NCBI GenBank assembly: GCA_047495785.1
Contig: JBLDXI010000054.1
Coordinates: forward strand, 4,216,001 to 4,280,000
Origin: Lepidodermella squamata
Lineage: Eukaryota > Animalia > Gastrotricha
Reading direction: 5' to 3'
DNA length: 64,000 bases
The notes under the pieces were generated by a model. That model did not search any database and had not been told where the DNA came from. It was given only the letters and a program-made list of their open reading frames with translations. Positions 4,520 through 50,560 of the stretch are shown in pieces. Made by a program: the position numbers and the translations under genes. Numbering within the stretch: position 1 is the first letter of the stretch; the number at the start of each line of letters is the position of its first letter.

Positions 4520-5457
4520 CCATCGGGAACTATTAACGCTTTTCTTATTCACCGCATGATATTCGTCTTTTCACCGTTTCATTTTCCCGTATTTTTTTGC
4601 AATTAACTCGATTCACTAATACCGCATATACACGAATCCTTTTTCACTAGTCATTCTCCAATTGAGCTTATGCTATTCATGGCGGGGATTAATGATCTGC
4701 AATCGAATGCGTAGGTTTAGAATCACTCGATATGTCCGCTACGATACTCACCTATTCGAAACCTTGATGCCTTGTAAAAAAGATCGCGGCTGAGATGTTT
4801 ATGCAGGCTTGGAAGTAAAGAAGAGCACCTCGGTGTTTGCTAGCCGCTATTAGAAGTGTGATCTAGATCAAGTCAAGCGCTAAATCATATACTGTTTTAA
4901 AGTATGTCTGCACTGCTAGCGTTTGGATTACGTGCCTTATAAAACAGTAAGACAGCAATAATGCGCTTTTATTGAGCTATGGCATTTTGGCAGCGACCGT
5001 AAGATCTTGCGAATACGCAGCTGTTGTCTAGTACTACTTCACGGTATGCAAACTGCTTTGAACATAACCGGGCTTAAGTGATTGTCGTTCCTTCAAGTAT
5101 TGTGCCTTCTCGTCGCAATCGACTTAAAATTTCTATACACATAGCTATCTCGAAAACGTGTTCTCATCAAAAGTGCCTCTTTTTGTAAAAAATCAGTTTT
5201 AACCTACGACCGCATGCTTTAATAACATTAATTTAATAATTTCATTTATAATCATGATGCTGTACGATGAAATTCAGCGACGAATGTTTCTCTGAAATGC
5301 CATTTTCGTAATAAAACTTGAGTGCTCAAGCTTTTGGCGGTGGCGGGCTTGCATTGCTTTTGACTAGTTTTCGCTATCAGTTTAGTTGCTTCCAGATACA
5401 GATTATACCTATTTGCTAATACCGATAGATACGCATATATTTTGAGGATTGAAAGAC

Positions 5458-8400
5458 ATGGATGATGAAGTCGGGGTCGCAGATCTGGTCCTATTGAGCA
5501 CTATCGACGAGGATTCCGTTGTTAATAATTTGAAAACCAGGTCTAAAGCATTTCATTACATTGTTTGGCGTTTTTACGACAACATTGTCAATTACAACAG
5601 ATTCACGAAAAATCGATTTTATACGTACATTGGCGAAGTTTGCGTTGCGGTCAATCCTTACAAATCTCTTTCCATCTACGACCAAAAAGTAGTTGATAAT
5701 TACGATTAAAGTCTATTTCGAAACACATTTTGTATTAAAAAAGACCGTGGATGAGTACAAGGGAAGAGAAATCTTTGAGAGACCACCGCATGTCTTCGCA
5801 ATAGCGAATGCGGCCTATCGAACGATGAACAACTTTCGCCGTGACACTTGCATCGTCATTTCCGGCGAATCCGGCTCAGGAAAAACCGAGAGTAGTAAAG
5901 TAAGTCATATTCTCCAAGTCGAGGTCCAGTTAATTCATATTGAACCACTTTCAAGATAATTATGCGATACATTGCCGCTGTCACAAATCCTCATAAGCAA
6001 GCTGACATAGAGAAAGTGAAACAAGTTCTCCTTCAATCGAACCATATTTTGGAGGCACTTGGAAACGCTCGAACGACGAGGAATGATAACAGCAGTCGCT
6101 TCGGGAAATACATGGAGATTTCTTTCGATTTCCGTGGGGAACCTGTCGGTGGGGACATGGCGCATTATTTGCTCGAAAAAAGCCGCGTCGTTCGTCACCA
6201 GAACGGAGAGCGAACATTTCATGCGTTCTACATGGTAATTTGATTGGCTGTCTTAAAAACTTGGTTTCAACCTATGGTTTTCTGTTATAGCTTCTCAATT
6301 GCGGCCAGCAGGCCTTGCTCGATTCACTCAAGCTTCAACCTGACCCACTGAAATATAGCGTTACATCGCAAGGCGGCTGTCCGAAATTCAATATGGATGA
6401 TCGCCAGTGGTTCATTAAGTGTCAACAGGCAATGCGCGATTGTCAATTCAAGCAGGAAGAAATCGACACCGTTTGGCAGGTTATAGCTGCGATTCTTCAT
6501 CTCGGCCAGCTCGACTTTTCTGAAAGCGCTAGCGCAGAAAATGGCAGTCCCTCGATTCCGCCAAAGCCTGCGCCTAAGCCTAAGCCGAATTTCGGTCCTG
6601 GTTCAGCTAACAACTCACCGGCATTGAAACCAAAACCTATAGCGGCTACCAATTCGCCCCAAATTTCAATAACTGACCGCGGAAACGGTTCGTTAGCTGC
6701 TGCGGCTGCTTTGCTGGGCGTCGAAGCTGCCGATTTGCAACGAGCGTTGACTACCCGGTCGGTTGCCACTGGGGCTGAAGTTGTGAAAACTGAACTTAGC
6801 GACTCGGTTGCTGCCTACGCTCGCGATGCCCTATCTAAAGCTTTGTATGAAAGATTGTTTTCACGAGTCTTTGATGCCATCAACCGCGTTATTCATGTCG
6901 ACCCTCGCCGTTCCCAGATGGAATCACTTGCCGTTATCGGCGTGCTCGATATTTATGGATTTGAGATTTTGGAGCAAAATAGCTTCGAACAGCTATGCAT
7001 AAATTATTGCAACGAAAAATTGCAGCAGCTCTTCATCGAATTGGTGCTTAAGCAGGAACAGGAAGAGTATCGTCGTGAAGGAATAAAATGGGTTGAAGTA
7101 AGCTACTTCAACAACAAGAACATTTGCGACCTGGTCGAGCAGCCGAGGAAGGGCCTGTTATCGGTACTTGATGACTGTTGCATCGCAGCAAAAAATCTAT
7201 CTGACAAGCACTTCCTTGAAGAACTGGACAGGCAGTTTGCGTCTGAAAGCCACTACAGCAGTCGCATGGTATGACCTGAGATATTTTTACGGTTTTCCAT
7301 CAAGTTGTGTGTTTTCTTTGCAGAAAGATAAAAGTTCGAAAGACATGGAGTTTCAAACTCACTTCAAGATCCGACATTATGCTGGCGATGTCATTTACAA
7401 CGTCAGCGGCTTTGTTGACAAGAATCGAGATGTCCTATTTTCAGACATCAAACGACTGTTCTTCAATTCGTCGAAGAACAGCGTTATCAGAGACATGTTC
7501 AAAGTCGACGGCTCGGTGGCGGAGAGCGAAGTTCAAAAGCGCCCTCCCACTGCAGGCGCCACTTTTCGATCATCGATGGCATCTCTTATCGAACACCTCA
7601 TGTCGAAACAGCCACAGTAAGTCTATATTTCACTTTTGTTTCCTCATCTACCTACTGCTTGGTGTAATTTCAGATATGTGAGATGCATCAAGCCTAATGC
7701 TGAAAAGTCGCCGATGACATTTCAGAATCCACTTGTCGCTCACCAGGTAAGTATACCAGCGTCGAATTTTCCAAACATTGTTTGCGATTATTATGCTAAT
7801 TTAGGTGAAATATTTGGGCCTGGTCGAGAACGTGAGAGTTCGGCGAGCTGGATTCGCTTCGCGTATGCTGTACGACCGTTTCATTGCTCGGTACAAGATG
7901 ATTTGCAAGGAAACATGGCCGAATTTCCGCCGTGGAGATCAACGAGACGCTGTCTCTGCAATCATTGCAACTCTGCCTCGGAATAACAGCAGCAAGGAAG
8001 ATGTTCACCAAGTAGGTTCAACATTTTTGAAATAGAGAAACGTCCAAGCCGAAATATTTAGTCCATAAATGAGGGCTGGGTCGAAGTCTGCGAGGTTCAA
8101 CATTTTAAAGTGGAGAAATCTATGATTTTCCCAATTAGCCGGCTGTATTATCTGATGGGCAAATGTTTTCAAATCGTTCACTAGAAAATATACGGGTCGT
8201 TATTGACATGAATTCCCAACAGCTCTTGAAGCTAGATCCGCAGCTTTTTATTTCAATTCACCTAGCTTAGTTTGTAAAATAATGCTCATTTTCAGACTTG
8301 TTTTGGAACCACGAAAGTTTTCATTCGGCACCCGCAAACTATCACCAGCCTTGAAGCTGCGCGACGCAACCGCTTGCCTTACGTCGCCACGATAATCGAA

Positions 8401-43312: not shown

Positions 43313-43388
43313 CTACCGTAGTTTTTCCGTAGCACTACGGTAAAACTACGGAAAAACTACGGTCAGTACTACGGTATGACTACGGTAA
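43313..43388. repeat. Left terminal array: 2 inverted (CCGTAG) plus 5 direct CTACGG units
   Basis: CTACGG at 43335, 43346, 43357, 43369, 43380; CCGTAG at 43316 and 43327. Confidence 0.92.
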
Positions 43389-44277
43389 AATAATTTTTAG
43401 GAAAAAAAGATTAAATCGCTTTGTAAAATGAAGGAAAACATTAGTTGTGTTTGATAAAATAGATTTGTTATCATGACCAACCATCAAAATCCATTTAGCA
43501 ATAATCTGCATGGGCTAAAAGCAATCAGAGACATAGATGAGGGCTTGCCCAGAGCCATCGCGGACATCGCGTTATAAAAGTGCCAAAGCTGCTCATATAT
43601 GCAAAGAAGTCCTCGAAACACTTCCTGGCTAGGGGAGATACGTTGCTCTATCATATGTTCACAGTGCCAACACGGAGTCTCTATTTCTCGGCCTCGATAA
43701 TCGCACGCAAAACCGCCTGTAAACCTGGGCATTTTAACCGTTTTCGACGAATCACACCTGCTTACATAACGCAAGTGAGGCTTGTAACTTTTCAGTGGGA
43801 TAAAAGAGGGTGTATTCTGTCAAGTTTTTGAGGTTCCAGTCAGCGTTCCTAATTCCTCGTCTTCGAATCTCGCTGCGCAACTACGGAACAGCGAGCCAGT
43901 AGTTAAGGAGCGAAACTCGGAAATCTCAATTTAAACTGCCGCGTGGAATAATTTTTAAACATCAAAATATATATTCCGATGAATAAATAAAACAGCTATG
44001 TGGTGAATTTTCAAATTTAAATTTTTTATTAAACAACCTTCAACATCTGCATACCCGCGCAACGCCAAGCTAGTGGTTGCCGGCGGCGAGCTCGGCACCC
44101 ACTACTTCGTTTTTTACTTTCAACTTGAAAACTACTGTTAATACTGTTGCTATAACGATCCTTCTTTGAGTCGATTGGTGCTTGTTTGTTTGGCTAGCAA
44201 TCATTCAAGCACCTAGCAAGCATCTTTAGGTGTTGGTCATAGAGAGTATTGTAAATGTCATTTCTAGGTATTATCTA

Positions 44278-45503
44278 ATGATGATTCGATCCTCGAATCT
44301 TATTTGTGTTCTGTCGGCCCCGACCACCTCCCTGCCGGCCAGGTTCTGGCGTGCAGACCCTGCAATCGAATTGAGAGCGCTCGTTGAGAGCTTCCGACTC
44401 CAATTCATGCCTCTCGAAAATAATGTGCAGCTATATTATGAAGTAAGTTAGGCATTTCTTGTACTAAAAGCATGCTAACTCGTGTTAAACCACAGCTCAA
44501 CGAAGAAACCGATATATTGCTGCATTCTAACGACTGTTTGAATATGTTCATCGAATATCACTCGAGTAGTAATCCGAAGAGAATAGCTCATTTGAAGCTA
44601 CTACCAGCAGCTTTGCCACCAGCAGCTGCTGCTCTGCAAAGTGCGCTTAATGCGTTAATGCCCAACAACAACAGCTCGGCATCGCCGTCTTCTTTCAACG
44701 CCCTGCAATCTCTACTACAATCTCCAGCTGCTGCTAGCGGGATTTTGCAGAACACTCCAGCTTTGCAAAGCTTGTTTCTGCAAAGTTCTGTGAACCCAAA
44801 AACAGCTACATCGGCAGCTTCGAGGCCGGCTGTAACCGCTACTCCTAGGGCTACGAAGCGCTCTGCTGCTGGAGCGTCTAAAGGCGAAGGCGTCTCGAAT
44901 AAAACGAGACGGGTAGCTTTCGAAGATGATTCGTCTCCGGGCTCTGACTCTGATGATGATGAGGATGGCGAAAGAAGTGGTAGGTAAGCTGCCCTACTTC
45001 ATTCAATAGTTAATAGTTAACAATGGGATTTCTATTAAGGAGTGCTCGATCTGCGGTCTATCGAAGCGGGGAGGATGGAAGTAGAGGAGACCGAGAGCGG
45101 AGGGATCGAGACCGAAGCAGCAGCATCAGCGGGGGAAACGCTCACGACCGCAGGAGCAGAAGATCTGACGACTTCTGGAGCGGTGAAACCTCTTGGAGAT
45201 CCCCTTGCGCGTAAGTATATTATTCAGTTTAATCCTGTTAATGTTTCACTTGCTTCTTTCTGTTTGTATAGCCTCCTCATAGCAAATACTGAGCAGGCGC
45301 GAGTAGCACCCCGTCCTTTCGAGCCCCGCGAAATCGATGTCCTTCAGCAAATAGCCCAACAATTATTAGCCGACAAAAAGGAGCTAACTGAAGAGACTGT
45401 GCTAGATGCTATGTCAAAGTTACGCATCAGCCTCGCTGAATCCTTCAGTGGACGTAAGCTCGGGAGTCTGGTAAGGAAAATGAAGGAAATCGGGAAGAAA
45501 TGA
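44278..45503 (+). CDS. Element gene A: PB1-like N-terminus, Ala/Ser- and RS/RD-rich middle, helical Myb/HTH-like C-terminus (351 aa, 4 exons)
   Basis: Exons 44278-44442, 44496-44983, 45040-45210, 45272-45503 join via GT-AG introns into one open frame (1056 nt); domain calls are pattern-level only. Confidence 0.7.
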
Positions 45504-45564
45504 TTTGAAGCAAGGTTTAGCTCATGCAATTGAGGTGATTTTTTGTTATTTAGATATTGTTGAA

Positions 45565-47980
45565 ATGCAAATCGTGAGGATCAGACATCAGTCAGCTGTC
45601 AAGCTTGCTGAAATAAAAGGGAGCGCTTTTCAGTGTCTCGTTGACGCGACAAAGCGTTTATTTGGCCCGGGCAAATATTCGTTCTTTTGGGGTAATTATT
45701 GTGAATTTTTGTTAAGTATAAGTATATGGAAAATCTCAGATTTAGGCATTGATAAGATCAATCTGGATGAAGAGCAGCTTGATTTAGCTCTCAAGTGTGA
45801 ATCTTCATTAACAATTGATGCCGTCAAGTGTGATGGTGCCCCTAGTGGCGAGAAGACGGCGAAGGCGAAAACTGAGAGTGCTGAATCGTCTCCTCCCAAG
45901 TCGAATTCACGCGAGCCTGATCGCCAGCCGCGCATTCAGAAGCGATTCTATGGTCGATTTCAGAAGGAGCATAGAAGTGGAAAGTCTAGACATCCTGGCA
46001 TAGGACGGCCGTGCCCGAAATGCGGGAAGAAGCTGAGTGATCGAACTGCTTTGGTTCGCCACTTACGAGGCAAGCGGGCTTGTCCAGTCGGTTTGGGCAA
46101 GGATTCGATTTCATCTCTTTGTGAAGAATCCCAAAGGTAATGAGACTTTTAGGCTCTATGGTACAGGAATATTGTGCTATGCTTTTCAGACTCGCTCAGC
46201 AATTAAAATCAAACAAAAAGCCCGAGGAATTCTCCAAGATAGAACCCTCCACGTCCACTGAGTGTAAAGCTATTCCTGCTCAAAACGTCGTCACTGTTAC
46301 TGTTAACAACGGGACATTGGCTGGAAACGTGTCAGAACCAAAGAAGAACGAAGAATCAAGTGTCGAAGAGATCGATTACTATTTCGCCCAGTTCGAGAAA
46401 TCATTTGATAATCCTATCTTTGGCTCCAGCAACCGAGCCCCGAGTACTATAAAAAAACTCATATCGTCGGCCCGGCAGGTCATTTCGATTTGCGGTTACC
46501 GTAATCTGGCTGAATTGTACAGCAAAGAGGGCTTCAACAAACTGGAGAAGCCTTTCATTCGAGCCGTTTCGTTCAGCTCGAAGAAAGCCATGTGCCAAGG
46601 CCTTCTAGAGTTTGTGGAATTCCTCGAGTTTTTCGATGAATTATCAGTGGATGAAAGGCGTCGGGTGCTTCTAATCGCGTATTTGAAGAAAGCTTACGCC
46701 TCGTTTTGCCGGGGCGTTGCTGAAGATAACAGCGTTCGTCGAATTCGGCTCTCCGAGAGCATTCGGAACGGAGAATTGCCCTCGTATGCCGAGGTTTGTC
46801 AAGTTGTTAATGCCCTCCAGCAGCAAGTTTCTGGTTTTCTATCGACGCCAAAGTTGAACGCTGAAGACCTTAAGACATTTTTTGCCTGGGTAGCTTTTAC
46901 TCTAGTAAAGCGCTGTGCCATCAGACCTGGCGCCCTTACCCAGATGCTTGTTCAAGAATTTCTAAAGCCTATTCGAGTTGGCGAGGACACGGTACTTATT
47001 CATGTGAAAGGTTAGTTTTTGAAGTTCTCTCAACTATTATGAGCTGACTTTGTCTGTTTCCGTTATGCAGGGCAAAAGGTTTCTACGTACAATGATGGGT
47101 ACGTCAATCTCCCGAAGGCGACATACGACGCCTGTTCGACCTACTGGAAGAAATGGCGGGTTAACAACCGCGACAATGAAAAGCGATTCTTCACCCTTGT
47201 TGTGGCGTCAAAGGTTCGCTGCCTTGAATCCTCGGATCTTGGCAGACTTTGCAATCTGAAATTTCGTGATGTCATTGGCAAGGACTTCACGTTCACTGGA
47301 TTCAGACAATACATGCAGACGATATTTGCGCAAACGTGCACGGATAAATGGGAAAAAAAATGGTTCAACCGTGTAATGCAGCACAGGTGCGTTGATTTCT
47401 GCCCCATTTTTTGCTTATTTAAATGAGTCATTCTAGCGATTCCGTCGGGGACAAATATTACGAGATGGCGATGGCGCCAAAGTTTCATGCCCAGATGGGC
47501 CTTAAAATTGAAAGTGAAATGCTCCTCAGGGAGGCTAACTGGGTGGCTGCGGGCAGCCGAATTGCCGACACAGAGTCGGAGAACGAGCAACCCATCTCCG
47601 ACGATGATGAATCTCAAGCCGCTCTTAATCCGAGCGCCATGCAATCGCCAAAGCGCAGTGCAGGCAGGTCAGTTGCTGGATCGAGGAAGTTGAGCGGCAG
47701 CGCAGTTAGCAGCGACGCTGAATCAACAGAGCTTTCGTCAACGAAGCGGGGTCGCGGTAGTAGGAAGTTGAGCGGCAGCGCAGTTAGCAGCGACGCTGAA
47801 TCAACAGAGCTTTCGTCAACGAAGCCGGGTCGCGGTAGATCCAAGAAGACCATCAAAGCCGAAAAATCGGCACAACAGCCGTTGAAGAAAGACACGAAGA
47901 AAGAACTGCCGTCGAAAGAAGACAAGGCAGTGAAGCGGGGTCGGGGTAGACCCAAAAAATCACTTGCTTTGAAACTCTGA
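45565..47980 (+). CDS. Element gene B: PB1-like, C2HC zinc finger, tyrosine recombinase, AT-hooks (734 aa, 5 exons)
   Basis: Exons 45565-45691, 45740-46136, 46190-47010, 47071-47386, 47437-47980 give a 2205-nt open frame; YR residues CAIRPG (R), VKGQKV (K), FTGFR (R), MQHS (H), DKYY (Y); CPKC-x12-H-x6-C; KRGRGRPKK; AATAAA at 48056. Confidence 0.85.
47684..47838 (+). repeat. Near-perfect in-frame 78-bp tandem duplication in the gene B tail
   Basis: RKLSGSAVSSDAESTELSSTK(R/P)GRG twice; units start at 47684 and 47762. Confidence 0.95.
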
Positions 47981-48188
47981 AGTCTTTGAAGTGACTTGAA
48001 AGCGTATCAAACACTTAGTTCAATTCATATTGAATTTAGTTCAATTTATTTTGAAAATAAAATCGAAATATTTCCAATGCTGTCTTTTATTACCTGGAAA
48101 TCGGATCAATGTTGTTTACCCTCGCAAGACAGTGCCGCGTGAATAGCACATGCAGAAAAAATTGAAGAGGCAGCGATATCAAATTTTG

Positions 48189-48271
48189 CTACGGTAGAAA
48201 AACTACTGCAATTACGACTACGGAAAAACTACGGAAAAACTACGGCAATAACTACGGTAGAACTACGGTAG
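48189..48271. repeat. Right terminal array of direct CTACGG units
   Basis: CTACGG at 48189, 48218, 48229, 48240, 48252, 48263. Confidence 0.92.
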
Positions 48272-50560
48272 AAATTCCCTAAAGAGATGAATTTTTTCGA
48301 AATGTGACTTTAGGTATTTATGCTCCGGAGTCATACTCGAAGATGATGGGAGAGTAACTTGTAATGGTGTTGAACTCGACATGGATGGGAAAGGGGTCAA
48401 TTTGGGAGCACATCTTGCCTATAGGAATTGCATTTGGCGTTTGTGATGACGGTGAATGAAGAAGATCATTGGCGGGTGAAATGGTCGTCGATAACGGCAG
48501 TTGCGGTGAATAGGAATGTTTAAATATGAATATTATAATGTTGTTTTTAGCCATGTGCCCGGTGCATTTTTCTCGCGCGACAGCGTTGAATTATTATTTC
48601 ATACTGTAGTAATAATAATAATATTTAAGGGAATAACGCGCTCTCAGTTTTTCTTAGCCATCGTTATTGTAGATATAGAACGCAGTATATTCAGTGCTGA
48701 GCCGCGCACACCCTACAATATTTTTGTTTGTTGTCTCGTCCTACGATGCCTATCGATCTGCGAGCGGTCCGCCGCTTGTCGTCAAAAAGAAAACCACCGA
48801 TAATAAATACACGCTACGAACGGCAATAGAAAAATAAAAAACGGGCAGAGGCGCACACGCGCATGCACACATACACATACACACATACAAAACAAAAAAC
48901 GCACTTTCCAGCAACGATATCAGTCATAAACATATTGCGTGGGCATAATATTGGGTGACTACGAGATAGCGCCAAGTAATAAAGGAATAGTGTGGCAGTA
49001 GCCGGCAGTACATAACGCATAAAAAAAGGTTGTTTACCCTTTCTGTTTGGCCATCGATCGCAGCGCGCGCATAAATACTGGATATATGGATGCAGCATCG
49101 GTCTAACAACACGGCGCGCTCAGGCTCGCCCTGTACTCCGTGTATTCAGACTATATGCGTGTTTGCACCGAAAAATGTGTGTGCTTTTTGTGTTCTACAG
49201 TCGGTTTGTTGCCCCTACAAACATCGGCGTATAAATCATATTATTATTATTATTCCTAACATTTTATTTCGTCCGCCGTTCGCTCCACCCTGCCTGTATT
49301 TTTCTCCGTCCAATCAAGCTGCATACTTATTACATAAGCATACAACCGAAGCCTTCTCGTCAACAATAAACCAACAACTTTTGGAGCACCAAAATATAAA
49401 TATACACGCGAGCGATTTGCATCATCGCCGGCCTCTACCTAGAGAGCATCCTCGTTCAGCTTGCCGTGGCGTTCCAACCCGCGCCCTTGGTTGGCGCTAG
49501 AGGCACGTTTGTGTTTGCGCAACATGCATTTTAGCCTGTTGCTTTGATGATACTTTGCTTGACTACGTATCGTTTCGGCCGTAATTTTTTTCGAGATTTG
49601 AAACGACGCCAAACGTGAGCTGATGTTGTCTAACGGCCTAATCTGATTCAATGTTACTTCCTCGGTGTTTTTCAACCACTGTCTTTATTCAACGACCATA
49701 GTGTTGGCATATGGATGAATTTATTTTCTGCCTTCGGTCTCATTGAAGCTCGAGGTATTTTCAGCAAGGCTACTTGCCTACATGCTTATGTAGGCTGTTG
49801 CTGAAAATGCCATGGAATGGTCAGTTACTGGACGAGGTTTTCTGAAGGTTTGATGTGTCCTGAATTATAAATTCTGAATTATTTTTCATATAGGCAAATT
49901 CATAGAATTTATTGAATAATTCGCATCTTCCACGCGTCGCACATCGTTAAACTCTCAGCACTATTTCTGGCTGACGACTTCGGCTGTTGGCTTGAAGCTC
50001 GATGATAATTATTAAAACCTAATTTTGCAGTGACATGTAGTCATTTCTGCACCCAACTTTTTGAGTGAATTATTGGATGCAGTTCAAGTGATATTCTTCT
50101 AGTTTGTTATCAGCTGATTTACTAGAAAATATTCCCTCTTCATGTCTTCGAAATTCAACCTGCCGGATCGCTAACCGTGCATTCGTTTAAATTTTTGGGT
50201 ATATATTTTGCCTTTCTCTTAAGGTTTTTGTTCTTGAATAGATTCTTAATGCCAATTAATTTCCATTGAACACTCCAAGACTGAATTATCCCGTCGGCTA
50301 GAGTGAGCTGGACAATCAAAACCAGTTACAGCATCATGTTACTGCGCGTCGCTTTTTTCGACGAGCAATAAAAGCTGACGATTGAAAGTTTCCGCACAAA
50401 ATTGGCGAAATGTAAGTTCTCGATTGATTGCATAGTTTTACGGGAATCCGGGCTTTTTCGCGGTTTCTCGTGTGTTCTATTCGGGGCAGCTATTTGAATT
50501 AACTGCGATATTGATTCCTTTTTCTTCGAACTTTAGATAGCCGCTGCCTTGGCAAGTTGC

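Follow-up and report, generated by a model that had tools for sequence, protein, structure and literature searches.

The element and its transcripts

The locus described here raises the question of whether a tyrosine recombinase of an animal mobile element, and the accessory protein encoded beside it, both begin with a PB1-like domain through which they could assemble. The window is a stretch of 64,000 nucleotides from the gastrotrich Lepidodermella squamata (contig JBLDXI010000054.1, positions 4,216,001 to 4,280,000); its first-pass annotation, made from the sequence alone, had proposed PB1-like N-termini for both proteins. The features discussed below are as follows, in window coordinates.

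43313-48271, + strand: the whole two-gene element (repeat finding and pattern scan)
44278-45503, + strand: gene A, accessory protein, four exons (splice joints from RNA runs X2 and X3)
44278-44442, 44496-44983, 45040-45210 and 45272-45503, + strand: exons of gene A (RNA splice joints)
44278-44442, + strand: gene A exon 1, putative first half of a beta-grasp, with beta1, beta2, alpha1 and beta3 by pattern (translation, alignment with five homologs, and a weak in-register profile match to the first half of the B domain)
44443-44495, + strand: first intron of gene A, 53 nt with GT..AG borders, not in frame, phase 0 (RNA)
44496-44603, + strand: first 36 codons of gene A exon 2, putative second half of the domain, LNEETDILLHSNDCL...IAHLKLL (translation)
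45565-47980, + strand: gene B, recombinase, five exons (RNA splice joints; R/K/R/H/Y motif blocks kept in relatives)
45565-45691, 45740-46136, 46190-47010, 47071-47386 and 47437-47980, + strand: exons of gene B (RNA splice joints)
45565-45691, + strand: gene B exon 1, beta1, beta2, alpha1 and beta3 of the PB1-like domain (AF2 model, alignment of seven relatives)
45692-45739, + strand: first intron of gene B, 48 nt, stop-free and in frame, the low-confidence loop in the AF2 model
45740-45828, + strand: first 30 codons of gene B exon 2, beta4, alpha2 (DEEQLDLALK) and beta5 (AF2 model, alignment)
46009-46086, + strand: single C2H2-type zinc finger, 3′ of the PB1-like domain (sub-threshold Pfam zf-C2H2 match, E 7e-4)

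The element is 5 kb in size and present in one copy in the window by pattern scan, and its ends are phased 11-nt CTACGG arrays (43313-43390 and 48206-48284) located by repeat finding and pattern scan. One assembled RNA contig of 3043 nt (run X2) has all seven introns of genes A and B spliced out exactly as they had been read; it skips 44443-44495 (53 nt) and 45692-45739 (48 nt), each bounded by GT..AG. In RNA contigs of run X3, three of the other five introns are likewise removed, and a poly-A loose end lies behind 45529 on the 3′ side of gene A. Two spliced mRNAs arise from 43313-48271. The element is intact, expressed and correctly spliced, and therefore the assembly of its proteins considered below is directly testable with cloned cDNAs.

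The peptides given in the first-pass annotation are borne out by the splice joints: exon 1 of gene A ends ...NNVQLYYE and exon 2 opens at 44496 with LNEETDILLHSNDCLNMFIEY and continues to IAHLKLL, while gene B opens with MQIVRIRH at 45565, its first exon running to ...KYSFFW (45691) and its second, which begins at 45740, giving D-LGIDKINLDEEQLDLALK...LTIDAV. The excision of 44443-44495 and 45692-45739 means that the aromatic strand is directly followed by an intron in both genes, as had been claimed; this intron falls in the beta3-beta4 turn and is of phase 0 in gene A and of phase 1 in gene B.

The recombinase and its classification

After its N-terminal domain, the gene B protein consists of the C2H2 finger, a Crypton-like tyrosine-recombinase core and AT-hook-like repeats, in that order. 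The finger is the best-conserved stretch of the N-terminal region of B, and most matches of the large protein searches align there. The catalytic Arg, Lys, Arg, His and Tyr occur in order within blocks that are kept in relatives (IRPGAL, QKxSTYNDG, FTFTxFRQ, NRVMQH and GxK(Y/F)YE), an identification made at the level of motifs only; Pfam is blank for the core on the B exons, and a PDB sequence search with the catalytic region of a relative gave nothing significant. Across all nine exons and the unspliced B orf, Pfam returned the weak C2H2 finger only. With E values allowed up to 10, DUF3504 matched neither the B exons nor the relatives P0004, P0006 and P0011, and Phage_integrase gave no match on the B exons; placement within CryptonA/I would therefore be tentative. 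A Pfam scan of the transcript-supported A and B exons matched no reverse transcriptase family, and on this ground an identity as DIRS or Ngaro was rejected; the element's other orfs are short (< 170 aa) and mostly overlap the A and B exons. The B orf drew a blank in a word-index protein search, and scanning JGI metagenomes with an alignment of the recombinase core produced pattern matches but no relative.

Crypton DNA transposons also combine a tyrosine recombinase with the lack of a reverse transcriptase. In some of them a second protein is encoded (the C48 peptidase of CryptonS), and introns occur as well, whereas animal Cryptons have been reported without terminal repeats or extra domains (Kojima and Jurka 2011, PMC3212892). 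In contrast to the animal Cryptons, the element of L. squamata carries a phased 11-nt array at each end, and it is further distinguished from Cryptons by its PB1-like domain, C2H2 finger, AT-hook-like repeats and a different accessory gene.

Predicted fold of the recombinase N-terminus

Residues 1 to about 75 of B belong to a domain that recurs at 22-41% identity, the intron position being shared, in ten related elements found in metagenome and Logan assemblies; it is a real, conserved domain, beyond chance. An AF2 model built from an 11-row alignment (pLDDT 77.2, pTM 0.65) has strands at residues 2-8, 11-17, 37-42, 65-66 and 82-89 and helices at residues 22-33 and 69-78, the order beta1-beta2-alpha1-beta3-beta4-alpha2-beta5 of a ubiquitin-like beta-grasp. 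The part encoded by exon 1 is modelled at pLDDT 88-92, and the sole part of low confidence is the insert encoded by the intron, 16 residues that are absent from the mature protein.

When the model was compared with the PDB by Foldseek, the first twelve ranks were all occupied by PB1 domains (aPKC-iota, p40/p67phox, NBR1 and p62; E 2.7e-3 to 2.4e-2), with no match reaching E 0.001. VIA-align applied to the Foldseek list scored the PB1 domains of MEKK2/3 at Z 10.8, 10.5 and 10.4 (rmsd 1.6-2.5 over 72-76 residues, identity 17-22%) and ubiquitin and ISG15 at Z 9.2-9.7; applied to all 48,161 representatives, it ranked PB1 domains as the top three (Z 10.4, 10.1 and 9.8). A shape search of the ESM Atlas returned NBR1, PHOX1-like, TFG and p62-like clusters with PF00564, at TM 0.64-0.69. 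On the strength of these models the N-terminus of B is predicted to be a ubiquitin-type beta-grasp whose nearest structural neighbours are PB1 domains, and for this protein the first-pass annotation of a PB1-like domain may stand.

The N-terminus of the gene A protein

For the gene A protein the same annotation has met with blank searches and a few weak leads. Judged from sequence patterns, the protein probably starts with the same type of fold as B, a putative beta-grasp. Its N-terminal block is kept in six elements, upstream of B, and the start of exon 2 is 44% identical to the L007 homolog, which reads LYYGEEGDDYMDILLTSDECL. The hydrophobic alternation of its strands and helices fits the order beta-beta-alpha-beta-beta-alpha-beta in six homologs, and acidic residues are found at the turn and helix start that correspond to the PB1 motif, forming a near-canonical acidic string in the L007 homolog (YGEEGDD...SDECL); a conserved beta1 lysine is absent. 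In an hhalign comparison of the first halves of the A and B domains, alpha1-beta3 fell into register with a probability of 32% (E 4.9e-4). When the language-model neighbours of exon 1 of one A homolog were listed, two PB1-bearing clusters came first (0.89 and 0.86, one of them mostly Rotifera), followed by other ubiquitin-clan domains, so that nine of the ten best belong to one clan; these scores are below 0.9 and therefore count as a lead only.

These observations bear on the alternative that the beta-grasp is confined to B, the N-terminus of A being different or poorly ordered, so that no PB1-PB1 pair exists and A works through its C-terminal domain, perhaps by binding DNA or by setting directionality. 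Past its N-terminus, A consists of a low-complexity acidic and Arg/Ser-rich linker followed by a C-terminal domain some 60 residues long, which is the best-conserved part of the protein and which hhalign did not match to the recombinase core. This peak of conservation is consistent with the alternative, as is the failure of every search to recognise either half of the A domain: PF00564 had no match on gene A exon by exon, in the window or in four homologs; a PDB-sequence search and profile searches against PDB sequences were blank; an atlas feature search with the acidic half of the L007 protein gave no usable match; and a word-index protein search with the gene A protein alignment found nothing beyond proteins of that family already collected. 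The predicted fold of exon 1 of one homolog, a partial domain, has pLDDT 50 and was too uncertain for structure searches. BLASTP, exon by exon, detected no similarity between A and B, hhalign found no match between their second halves, and its probability fell to 4.5% when six A sequences were compared with the whole B domain. Against the alternative stand the secondary-structure pattern shared by six homologs, the acidic string of L007, the ranking of PB1 and ubiquitin-clan neighbours, and the in-register alignment of the first halves. It is possible that the fold is limited to B, but a related fold on A is the more probable reading.

An out-of-frame intron interrupts the N-terminal domain of A in all six homologs; five were measured, and their introns are 53, 46, 49, 65 or 56, and 46 nt long. 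Among 14 related loci, neither an uninterrupted domain nor an in-frame intron within it was found. A common intron place in A and B as a sign of their duplication was rejected, because the A intron occupies three different places among homologs and is elsewhere in five of six.

PB1 domain or generic ubiquitin-like domain

The B domain resembles PB1 domains (PF00564; MEKK2/3, aPKC-Par6, p40/p67phox, p62, NBR1 and TFG) in its size of about 80 residues and order of the grasp, in structural superposition (Z up to 10.8, rmsd 1.6), and in forming the very beginning of a protein with several domains; in the B family, a basic beta1 residue and an acidic first turn of alpha2 may be further points in common. 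It differs from them in having no significant sequence match, in the degenerate acidic motif of the window's copy, and in its fusion with a zinc finger and a tyrosine recombinase, for which no precedent was found in the literature searched.

The Pfam search that the first-pass annotation proposed for the N-terminal regions of both proteins came out negative: PF00564 matched the B domain of the window neither exon by exon nor in the unspliced orf. Its profile aligns with the relative P0006 at 19.3 bits (E 1.1e-3), below the gathering score of 23.6 bits and over profile positions 46-81 only, in the exon-2 half; PB1 is the only Pfam family seen on the N-terminal domain of any relative. Scores of PF00564 are lowered because the insert encoded by the intron splits the domain in every B sequence scanned. 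A PDB sequence search with the B domain found nothing significant, and when the B profile was compared with the sequences of solved structures, the only domain-length alignment was to the PB1 chain of TFG (9e7c_A), in register and non-significant at E 1.1.

Individual residues give a mixed picture. The basic residue of beta1, equated with the canonical lysine of type II PB1 domains by strand position only, is Arg5 in the window's B and lysine in six of ten relatives; three have Gly or Ser. Lys13 on beta2 is kept in nine of ten relatives. By eye, alpha2 starts with D/E-D/E-x-Q/K-L in nine of the eleven exon-2 sequences compared, and the beta3-beta4 turn contains D-G-D or D-S-D in several relatives (DCDGD in P0006, FDGD in P0001), whereas the window's B reads D-LGID-KINL-DEEQLD, in which the canonical acidic OPCA motif of type I domains, YxDEDGD, is degenerate (W-D-LGID).

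A generic ubiquitin-like domain at the N-terminus of B, with no front-to-back pairing of the PB1 kind, would fit these deviations; such a domain might bind chromatin or a host factor that recognises ubiquitin-like folds, or it might lie as a regulatory lid on the catalytic core of the recombinase itself. The structural comparisons leave room for this explanation: the lead of PB1 over ubiquitin-like domains is about 1 Z-unit, which VIA-align rates as nearly tied, ubiquitin, ISG15, FAT10, the Dsk2 UBL and CIDE-N fall within about 1-2 Z of the PB1 matches, and the N-terminal UBL domains of Dsk2, Rad23, parkin and NP95 share the superfold at a nearly equal Z of 9.1-9.7. On the other hand, UBL domains rank below PB1 domains in every structure search made with the B model (Foldseek, both VIA-align runs and the ESM Atlas), and P0006 and TFG provide the sole Pfam family and the sole domain-length alignment, both of them PB1. 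An acidic cluster at the helix start and basic residues on beta1 and beta2 are features of PB1 domains, not of UBL domains. A generic ubiquitin-like domain is considered an unlikely explanation, slightly more so than a fold limited to B. That the resemblance is due to chance, neither N-terminus being a folded domain, is very improbable: neither window protein has a significant sequence-family match, but the conservation of B over ten elements and a pLDDT of about 90 over its first 40 residues contradict it for B, and A is kept over six elements.

Possible assembly of the recombination complex

The reading preferred here, to which a probability of about 0.55 may be assigned, is that the element encodes a recombinase with a PB1-like N-terminus and an accessory protein with a probably similar fold, and that the two N-termini act as assembly modules. 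The N-terminal domains of A and B would then be protein-protein modules of the PB1 kind. Given its basic residues on beta1 and beta2 and the acidic D-E-x-Q-L start of alpha2 that nearly all relatives show, B may pair head-to-tail with itself, and A, acidic and lacking the conserved beta1 lysine, might dock on the basic face of B. With such pairing, several neighbouring recombinase molecules would be helped onto the phased 11-nt CTACGG arrays that bound the element, and A would be drawn into the complex. A fully matched PB1 pair, of acidic type on A and of basic or dual type on the recombinase, forming a head-to-tail polymer with one recombinase per helical turn on the CTACGG arrays and capped or regulated by A, is a speculative extension of low probability. 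Hetero-oligomerisation of A and B, an Xis-like role of A and polymer capping, all suggested by the first-pass annotation, may occur; overall that interpretation is partly supported.

Mobile elements do acquire PB1 domains, as seen in the PB1-MULEs and MUSTANG-B genes of plants, in which a PB1 domain lies within the transposase gene of a DNA transposon (PMC4948706). PB1-MULEs encode plant DDE (Mutator-like) transposases and have one PB1 domain on one protein; in contrast, the element described here is an animal tyrosine-recombinase element in which a second, possibly PB1-like protein is encoded beside the recombinase. The statement that no fusion of PB1 with a tyrosine recombinase has been described agrees with the literature searched, in which none was found. 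The domain architecture is new; its parts are known.

Tyrosine recombinases act as tetramers, the assembly of which usually proceeds via the catalytic and core-binding domains and accessory DNA-bending proteins. We know of no recombinase or transposase for which assembly scaffolded by PB1 domains has been described. If the reading is correct, the recombinase would possess a dedicated N-terminal module for polymerisation, with a counterpart on its partner protein; its recombination complex would be built and controlled differently, and a matched PB1 pair, should it exist, would amount to a PB1-scaffolded recombination synapse. The animal tyrosine-recombinase transposon of L. squamata would then join the plant PB1-MULEs on the short list of mobile elements that have captured a PB1 domain.

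Structure and expression of the element

The two genes lie in an element whose borders are formed by CTACGG repeated every 11 nt, as found by repeat search and pattern scan; one copy is present in the window. The exon structure that had been derived from the sequence was matched exactly by later RNA evidence.

Features of the element in the window
43313-48271, genes A and B on the + strand: whole two-gene element, about 5 kb, CTACGG arrays at both ends
44278-44442, 44496-44983, 45040-45210, 45272-45503, +: gene A exons (accessory protein), from RNA splice joints
45565-45691, 45740-46136, 46190-47010, 47071-47386, 47437-47980, +: gene B exons (Crypton-like tyrosine recombinase), from RNA splice joints

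An assembled contig of 3043 nt from RNA run X2 aligns with 44290-47713 after removal of seven GT..AG introns (53, 56, 61, 48, 53, 60 and 50 nt), and three of the same splice joints were seen in RNA run X3. The element is expressed and intact. In X3 a poly-A tail follows 45529, 26 nt past the gene A stop codon and just 36 nt upstream of the gene B start codon; despite this end between the genes, the single spliced X2 contig spans both, and is either a read-through two-gene transcript or a product of overlapping transcripts merged by the assembler. The approximately 890 nt from the left CTACGG array to the start of gene A (43391-44277) have no convincing orf and zero coverage by X2 and X3 contigs, and are presumably the promoter and 5′ region of the element.

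The neighbourhood is eukaryotic, with host genes for a myosin, a P-type ATPase and an HMG-box protein near the element. DNA run X1 contains many contigs 90-99% like the element and covers the terminal arrays very deeply, indicating several copies in the source genome. Tiny introns (48-61 nt) and the Rotifera-dominated cluster of a language-model search (see below) were read as hints of a rotifer host.

The N-terminal domain of the recombinase

The first-pass annotation proposed that both proteins begin with a PB1-like domain (Pfam PF00564, a ubiquitin-like beta-grasp pairing module), interrupted in each gene by an intron immediately past the aromatic strand; the peptides it quoted are present in the sequence, and the intron positions were confirmed in the window. 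Since the first intron of gene B (48 nt) is in frame and has no stops, the unspliced orf 45565-46134 spans the N-terminal domain in full, together with 16 residues coded by the intron. Pfam searches with the gene B exons and the unspliced orf matched only a weak C2H2 finger, and a word-index protein search with gene B gave no match. Of 1.84 billion representatives searched exhaustively, 20 matched, the majority on the finger region, and several of the 20 include the N-terminal domain.

Related elements were drawn from metagenome assemblies at ENA, from one JGI metagenome and from Logan assemblies, and ten of them possess the same N-terminal block with 22-41% identity to the window. Its approximate consensus is M-x-I-V-K-L-R-Y ... 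K-L-A-E-L ... F-x-x-L-x-S-x-x-x-x-L-F ... V-S-F-x-W before the intron and D-x-I-x-L-D-E-x-Q-L-x-I-A-L-K ... I-x-I-D-V past it, and the intron point after the strand-3 tryptophan is constant in all ten. Pfam found no PB1 in either protein of the window; in a relative's B protein, P0006, the exon-2 half (DCDGDFVTITNNTDLLNF...) matched PB1 as its sole Pfam family with 19.3 bits (E 1.1e-3), under the cut-off of 23.6 bits. The B profile aligned in register with the PB1 chain of TFG at a non-significant E of 1.1. In the related contig L011 (1-620), the recombinase orf begins at the zinc-finger region, and the 540 nt upstream of it showed no PB1-like exon; because an unrelated orf occupies that sequence, this element is probably a truncated copy.

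An AlphaFold2 model of the domain, built from an 11-row alignment and including the intron-coded insert, has a pLDDT of 77.2 and a pTM of 0.65. It consists of strands 2-8, 11-17, 37-42, 65-66 and 82-89 and helices 22-33 and 69-78, and its sole disordered stretch (48-60) is the insert. This is a ubiquitin-type beta-grasp, a fold that is nearly certain for the domain. Foldseek against the PDB placed PB1 domains (aPKC-iota, p40/p67phox, NBR1, p62) at ranks 1-12, none with an E-value under 0.001. When the Foldseek list was realigned with VIA-align, PB1 domains of MEKK2/3 scored Z 10.8, 10.5 and 10.4 (rmsd 1.6-2.5 over 72-76 residues, 17-22% identity) and aPKC-iota and NBR1 scored 9.9, followed by ISG15 and ubiquitin at 9.2-9.7; the latter scores bear on the main rival explanation, in which the domain would be a ubiquitin-like module that has some other partner. 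An independent VIA-align run against all representatives again placed three PB1 chains at the top (Z 10.4, 10.1 and 9.8), with ubiquitin-like domains at 9.4 and lower, and an ESM Atlas shape search recovered clusters of NBR1, PHOX1-like, TFG and p62-like proteins, most of them with PF00564. PB1 is the best-supported subfamily, with a probability of about 0.75-0.8 and no wide margin over other ubiquitin-like domains. For gene B, the PB1-like start is supported by the modelled fold and its top structural matches.

The N-terminal domain of the accessory protein

A gene A homolog is directly upstream of gene B in five related contigs (L001, L007, L008, L013 and L014). The N-terminal blocks of these homologs alternate as expected of strand, strand, helix, strand, strand, helix and strand. 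The copy in L007 is closest to that of the window, its two halves being 34% and 44% identical, and its sequence, IYQ/LYYGEEGDDYMDILLTSDECLKSLF...LAFLKLI, is near the canonical acidic PB1 motif except for three additional turn residues. Every gene A has an intron in this domain, located after YYE in the window (where it is 53 nt long and shifts the frame), before LYY in L007, and where helix 2 begins in L001, L008, L013 and L014.

Introns within the gene A N-terminal domain
Window: 44443-44495
L007: 801-846
L001: 2666-2714
L008: 3033-3097
L014: 1750-1795

As none of the introns is in frame, the domain is contiguous in none of the genes, and Pfam, PDB-sequence and profile searches with its pieces, exon by exon, were all blank. 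The longest first exon, that of L008, covers four of the five strands and folded with a pLDDT of 50, forming just helix 1 and strands 3-4, an outcome that is expected because the central fifth strand is missing and that was given no weight. When first halves of four A and seven B sequences were compared by hhalign, helix 1 and strand 3 aligned in register at a probability of 32% (E 4.9e-4), a value that fell to 4.5% once six A sequences were set against the entire B domain. A language-model feature search with exon 1 of the L013 copy found two PB1-bearing clusters nearest (0.89 and 0.86, one mostly Rotifera), then GRHL1_C, TDP-43_N, CIDE-N, a plant ubiquitin-like domain, the Par3 N-terminus and DWNN, all of them small ubiquitin-like or PB1-like folds, at scores that were all below 0.9, the threshold for more than a lead. 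It is moderately probable that the gene A protein begins with a beta-grasp, and there is about an even chance that the domain is PB1-like.

Relationship of the two proteins and their C-terminal regions

BLASTP found no similarity between A and B, and profile comparison of the second halves of their N-terminal domains found no match. The introns at nearly coincident places in the window are in phase 0 in A and phase 1 in B; a shared intron place as a sign of A/B duplication was rejected, since the position varies within the A family and so gives no evidence of duplication. The A-domain intron is at three places among six related elements and the B intron is fixed in ten, which suggests that introns have been gained or have slid in a mobile element.

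Besides the N-terminal block, homologs of gene A are identified by a well conserved domain at the C-terminus, about 60 residues long (Y-S-P-x-E ... D-A-M ... D-F ... F-x-x-R-K-x-x-N-L-I-x-K-M). This domain matched nothing in Pfam and has no detectable similarity with the core of the recombinase.

Gene A C-terminal domain
Window: 45273-45500
L006: 100-315
L010: 1054-1272
L007: 1200-1362

The C-terminal tail of the recombinase in the window contains a 78-nt tandem duplication (47684-47838, 99% identical) that encodes GRG/RGRP AT-hook-like motifs, with a third, RGRGRPKK, at 47932-47960; in the relative in L001, the same place (5315-5505) is taken by separate tandem repeats of 81 nt, which encode RRGRPPG. 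The L001 metagenome scaffold also has a 329-residue orf (251-1240), close to the related element on its upstream side, that appears by eye to resemble a mariner/Tc1-type transposase.

A possible assembly mechanism

It is established that PB1 domains pair front to back by contact between an acidic face and the basic face of a neighbour, and that those with both faces polymerise (for example Sumimoto et al. 2007, cited in PMC4948706). Within the B family, strand 1 has a basic residue in seven of ten copies (Arg5 in the window), strand 2 has Lys13 in nine of ten, and helix 2 has an acidic start in nearly all; the A family has an acidic turn and helix start, and a strand 1 with no conserved lysine. 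These features fit head-to-tail B-B contacts through the putative PB1 faces and docking of A on B. Each end of the element has five to six CTACGG units one helical turn apart, and such phasing, together with the putative B-B contacts, suggests that the recombinase may be loaded cooperatively on the arrays.

Comparison with known transposons

Animal Cryptons have been described as single-protein elements with neither terminal repeats nor extra domains, although CryptonS may have a C48 peptidase gene (PMC3212892); in contrast, the element of the window has two genes and CTACGG arrays. Pfam DUF3504 and Phage_integrase did not match gene B, and blocks containing R, K, R, H and Y are conserved among its relatives. 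The element may be called Crypton-like; placement in CryptonA/I is not adopted. Transposons with PB1 domains are already known in plants, namely PB1-MULEs and MUSTANG-B (PMC4948706). In the literature searched, Crypton was not found combined with "PB1 domain", and "tyrosine recombinase" with "PB1 domain" was found only in an algal genome paper that has each term once. This agrees with the earlier statement that no PB1-tyrosine recombinase fusion has been described: within that literature, the architecture of PB1, finger and tyrosine recombinase, with a possible second PB1-like protein, appears to be undescribed. It would join known parts in a new way, in an element that is expressed and intact, and is directly testable.
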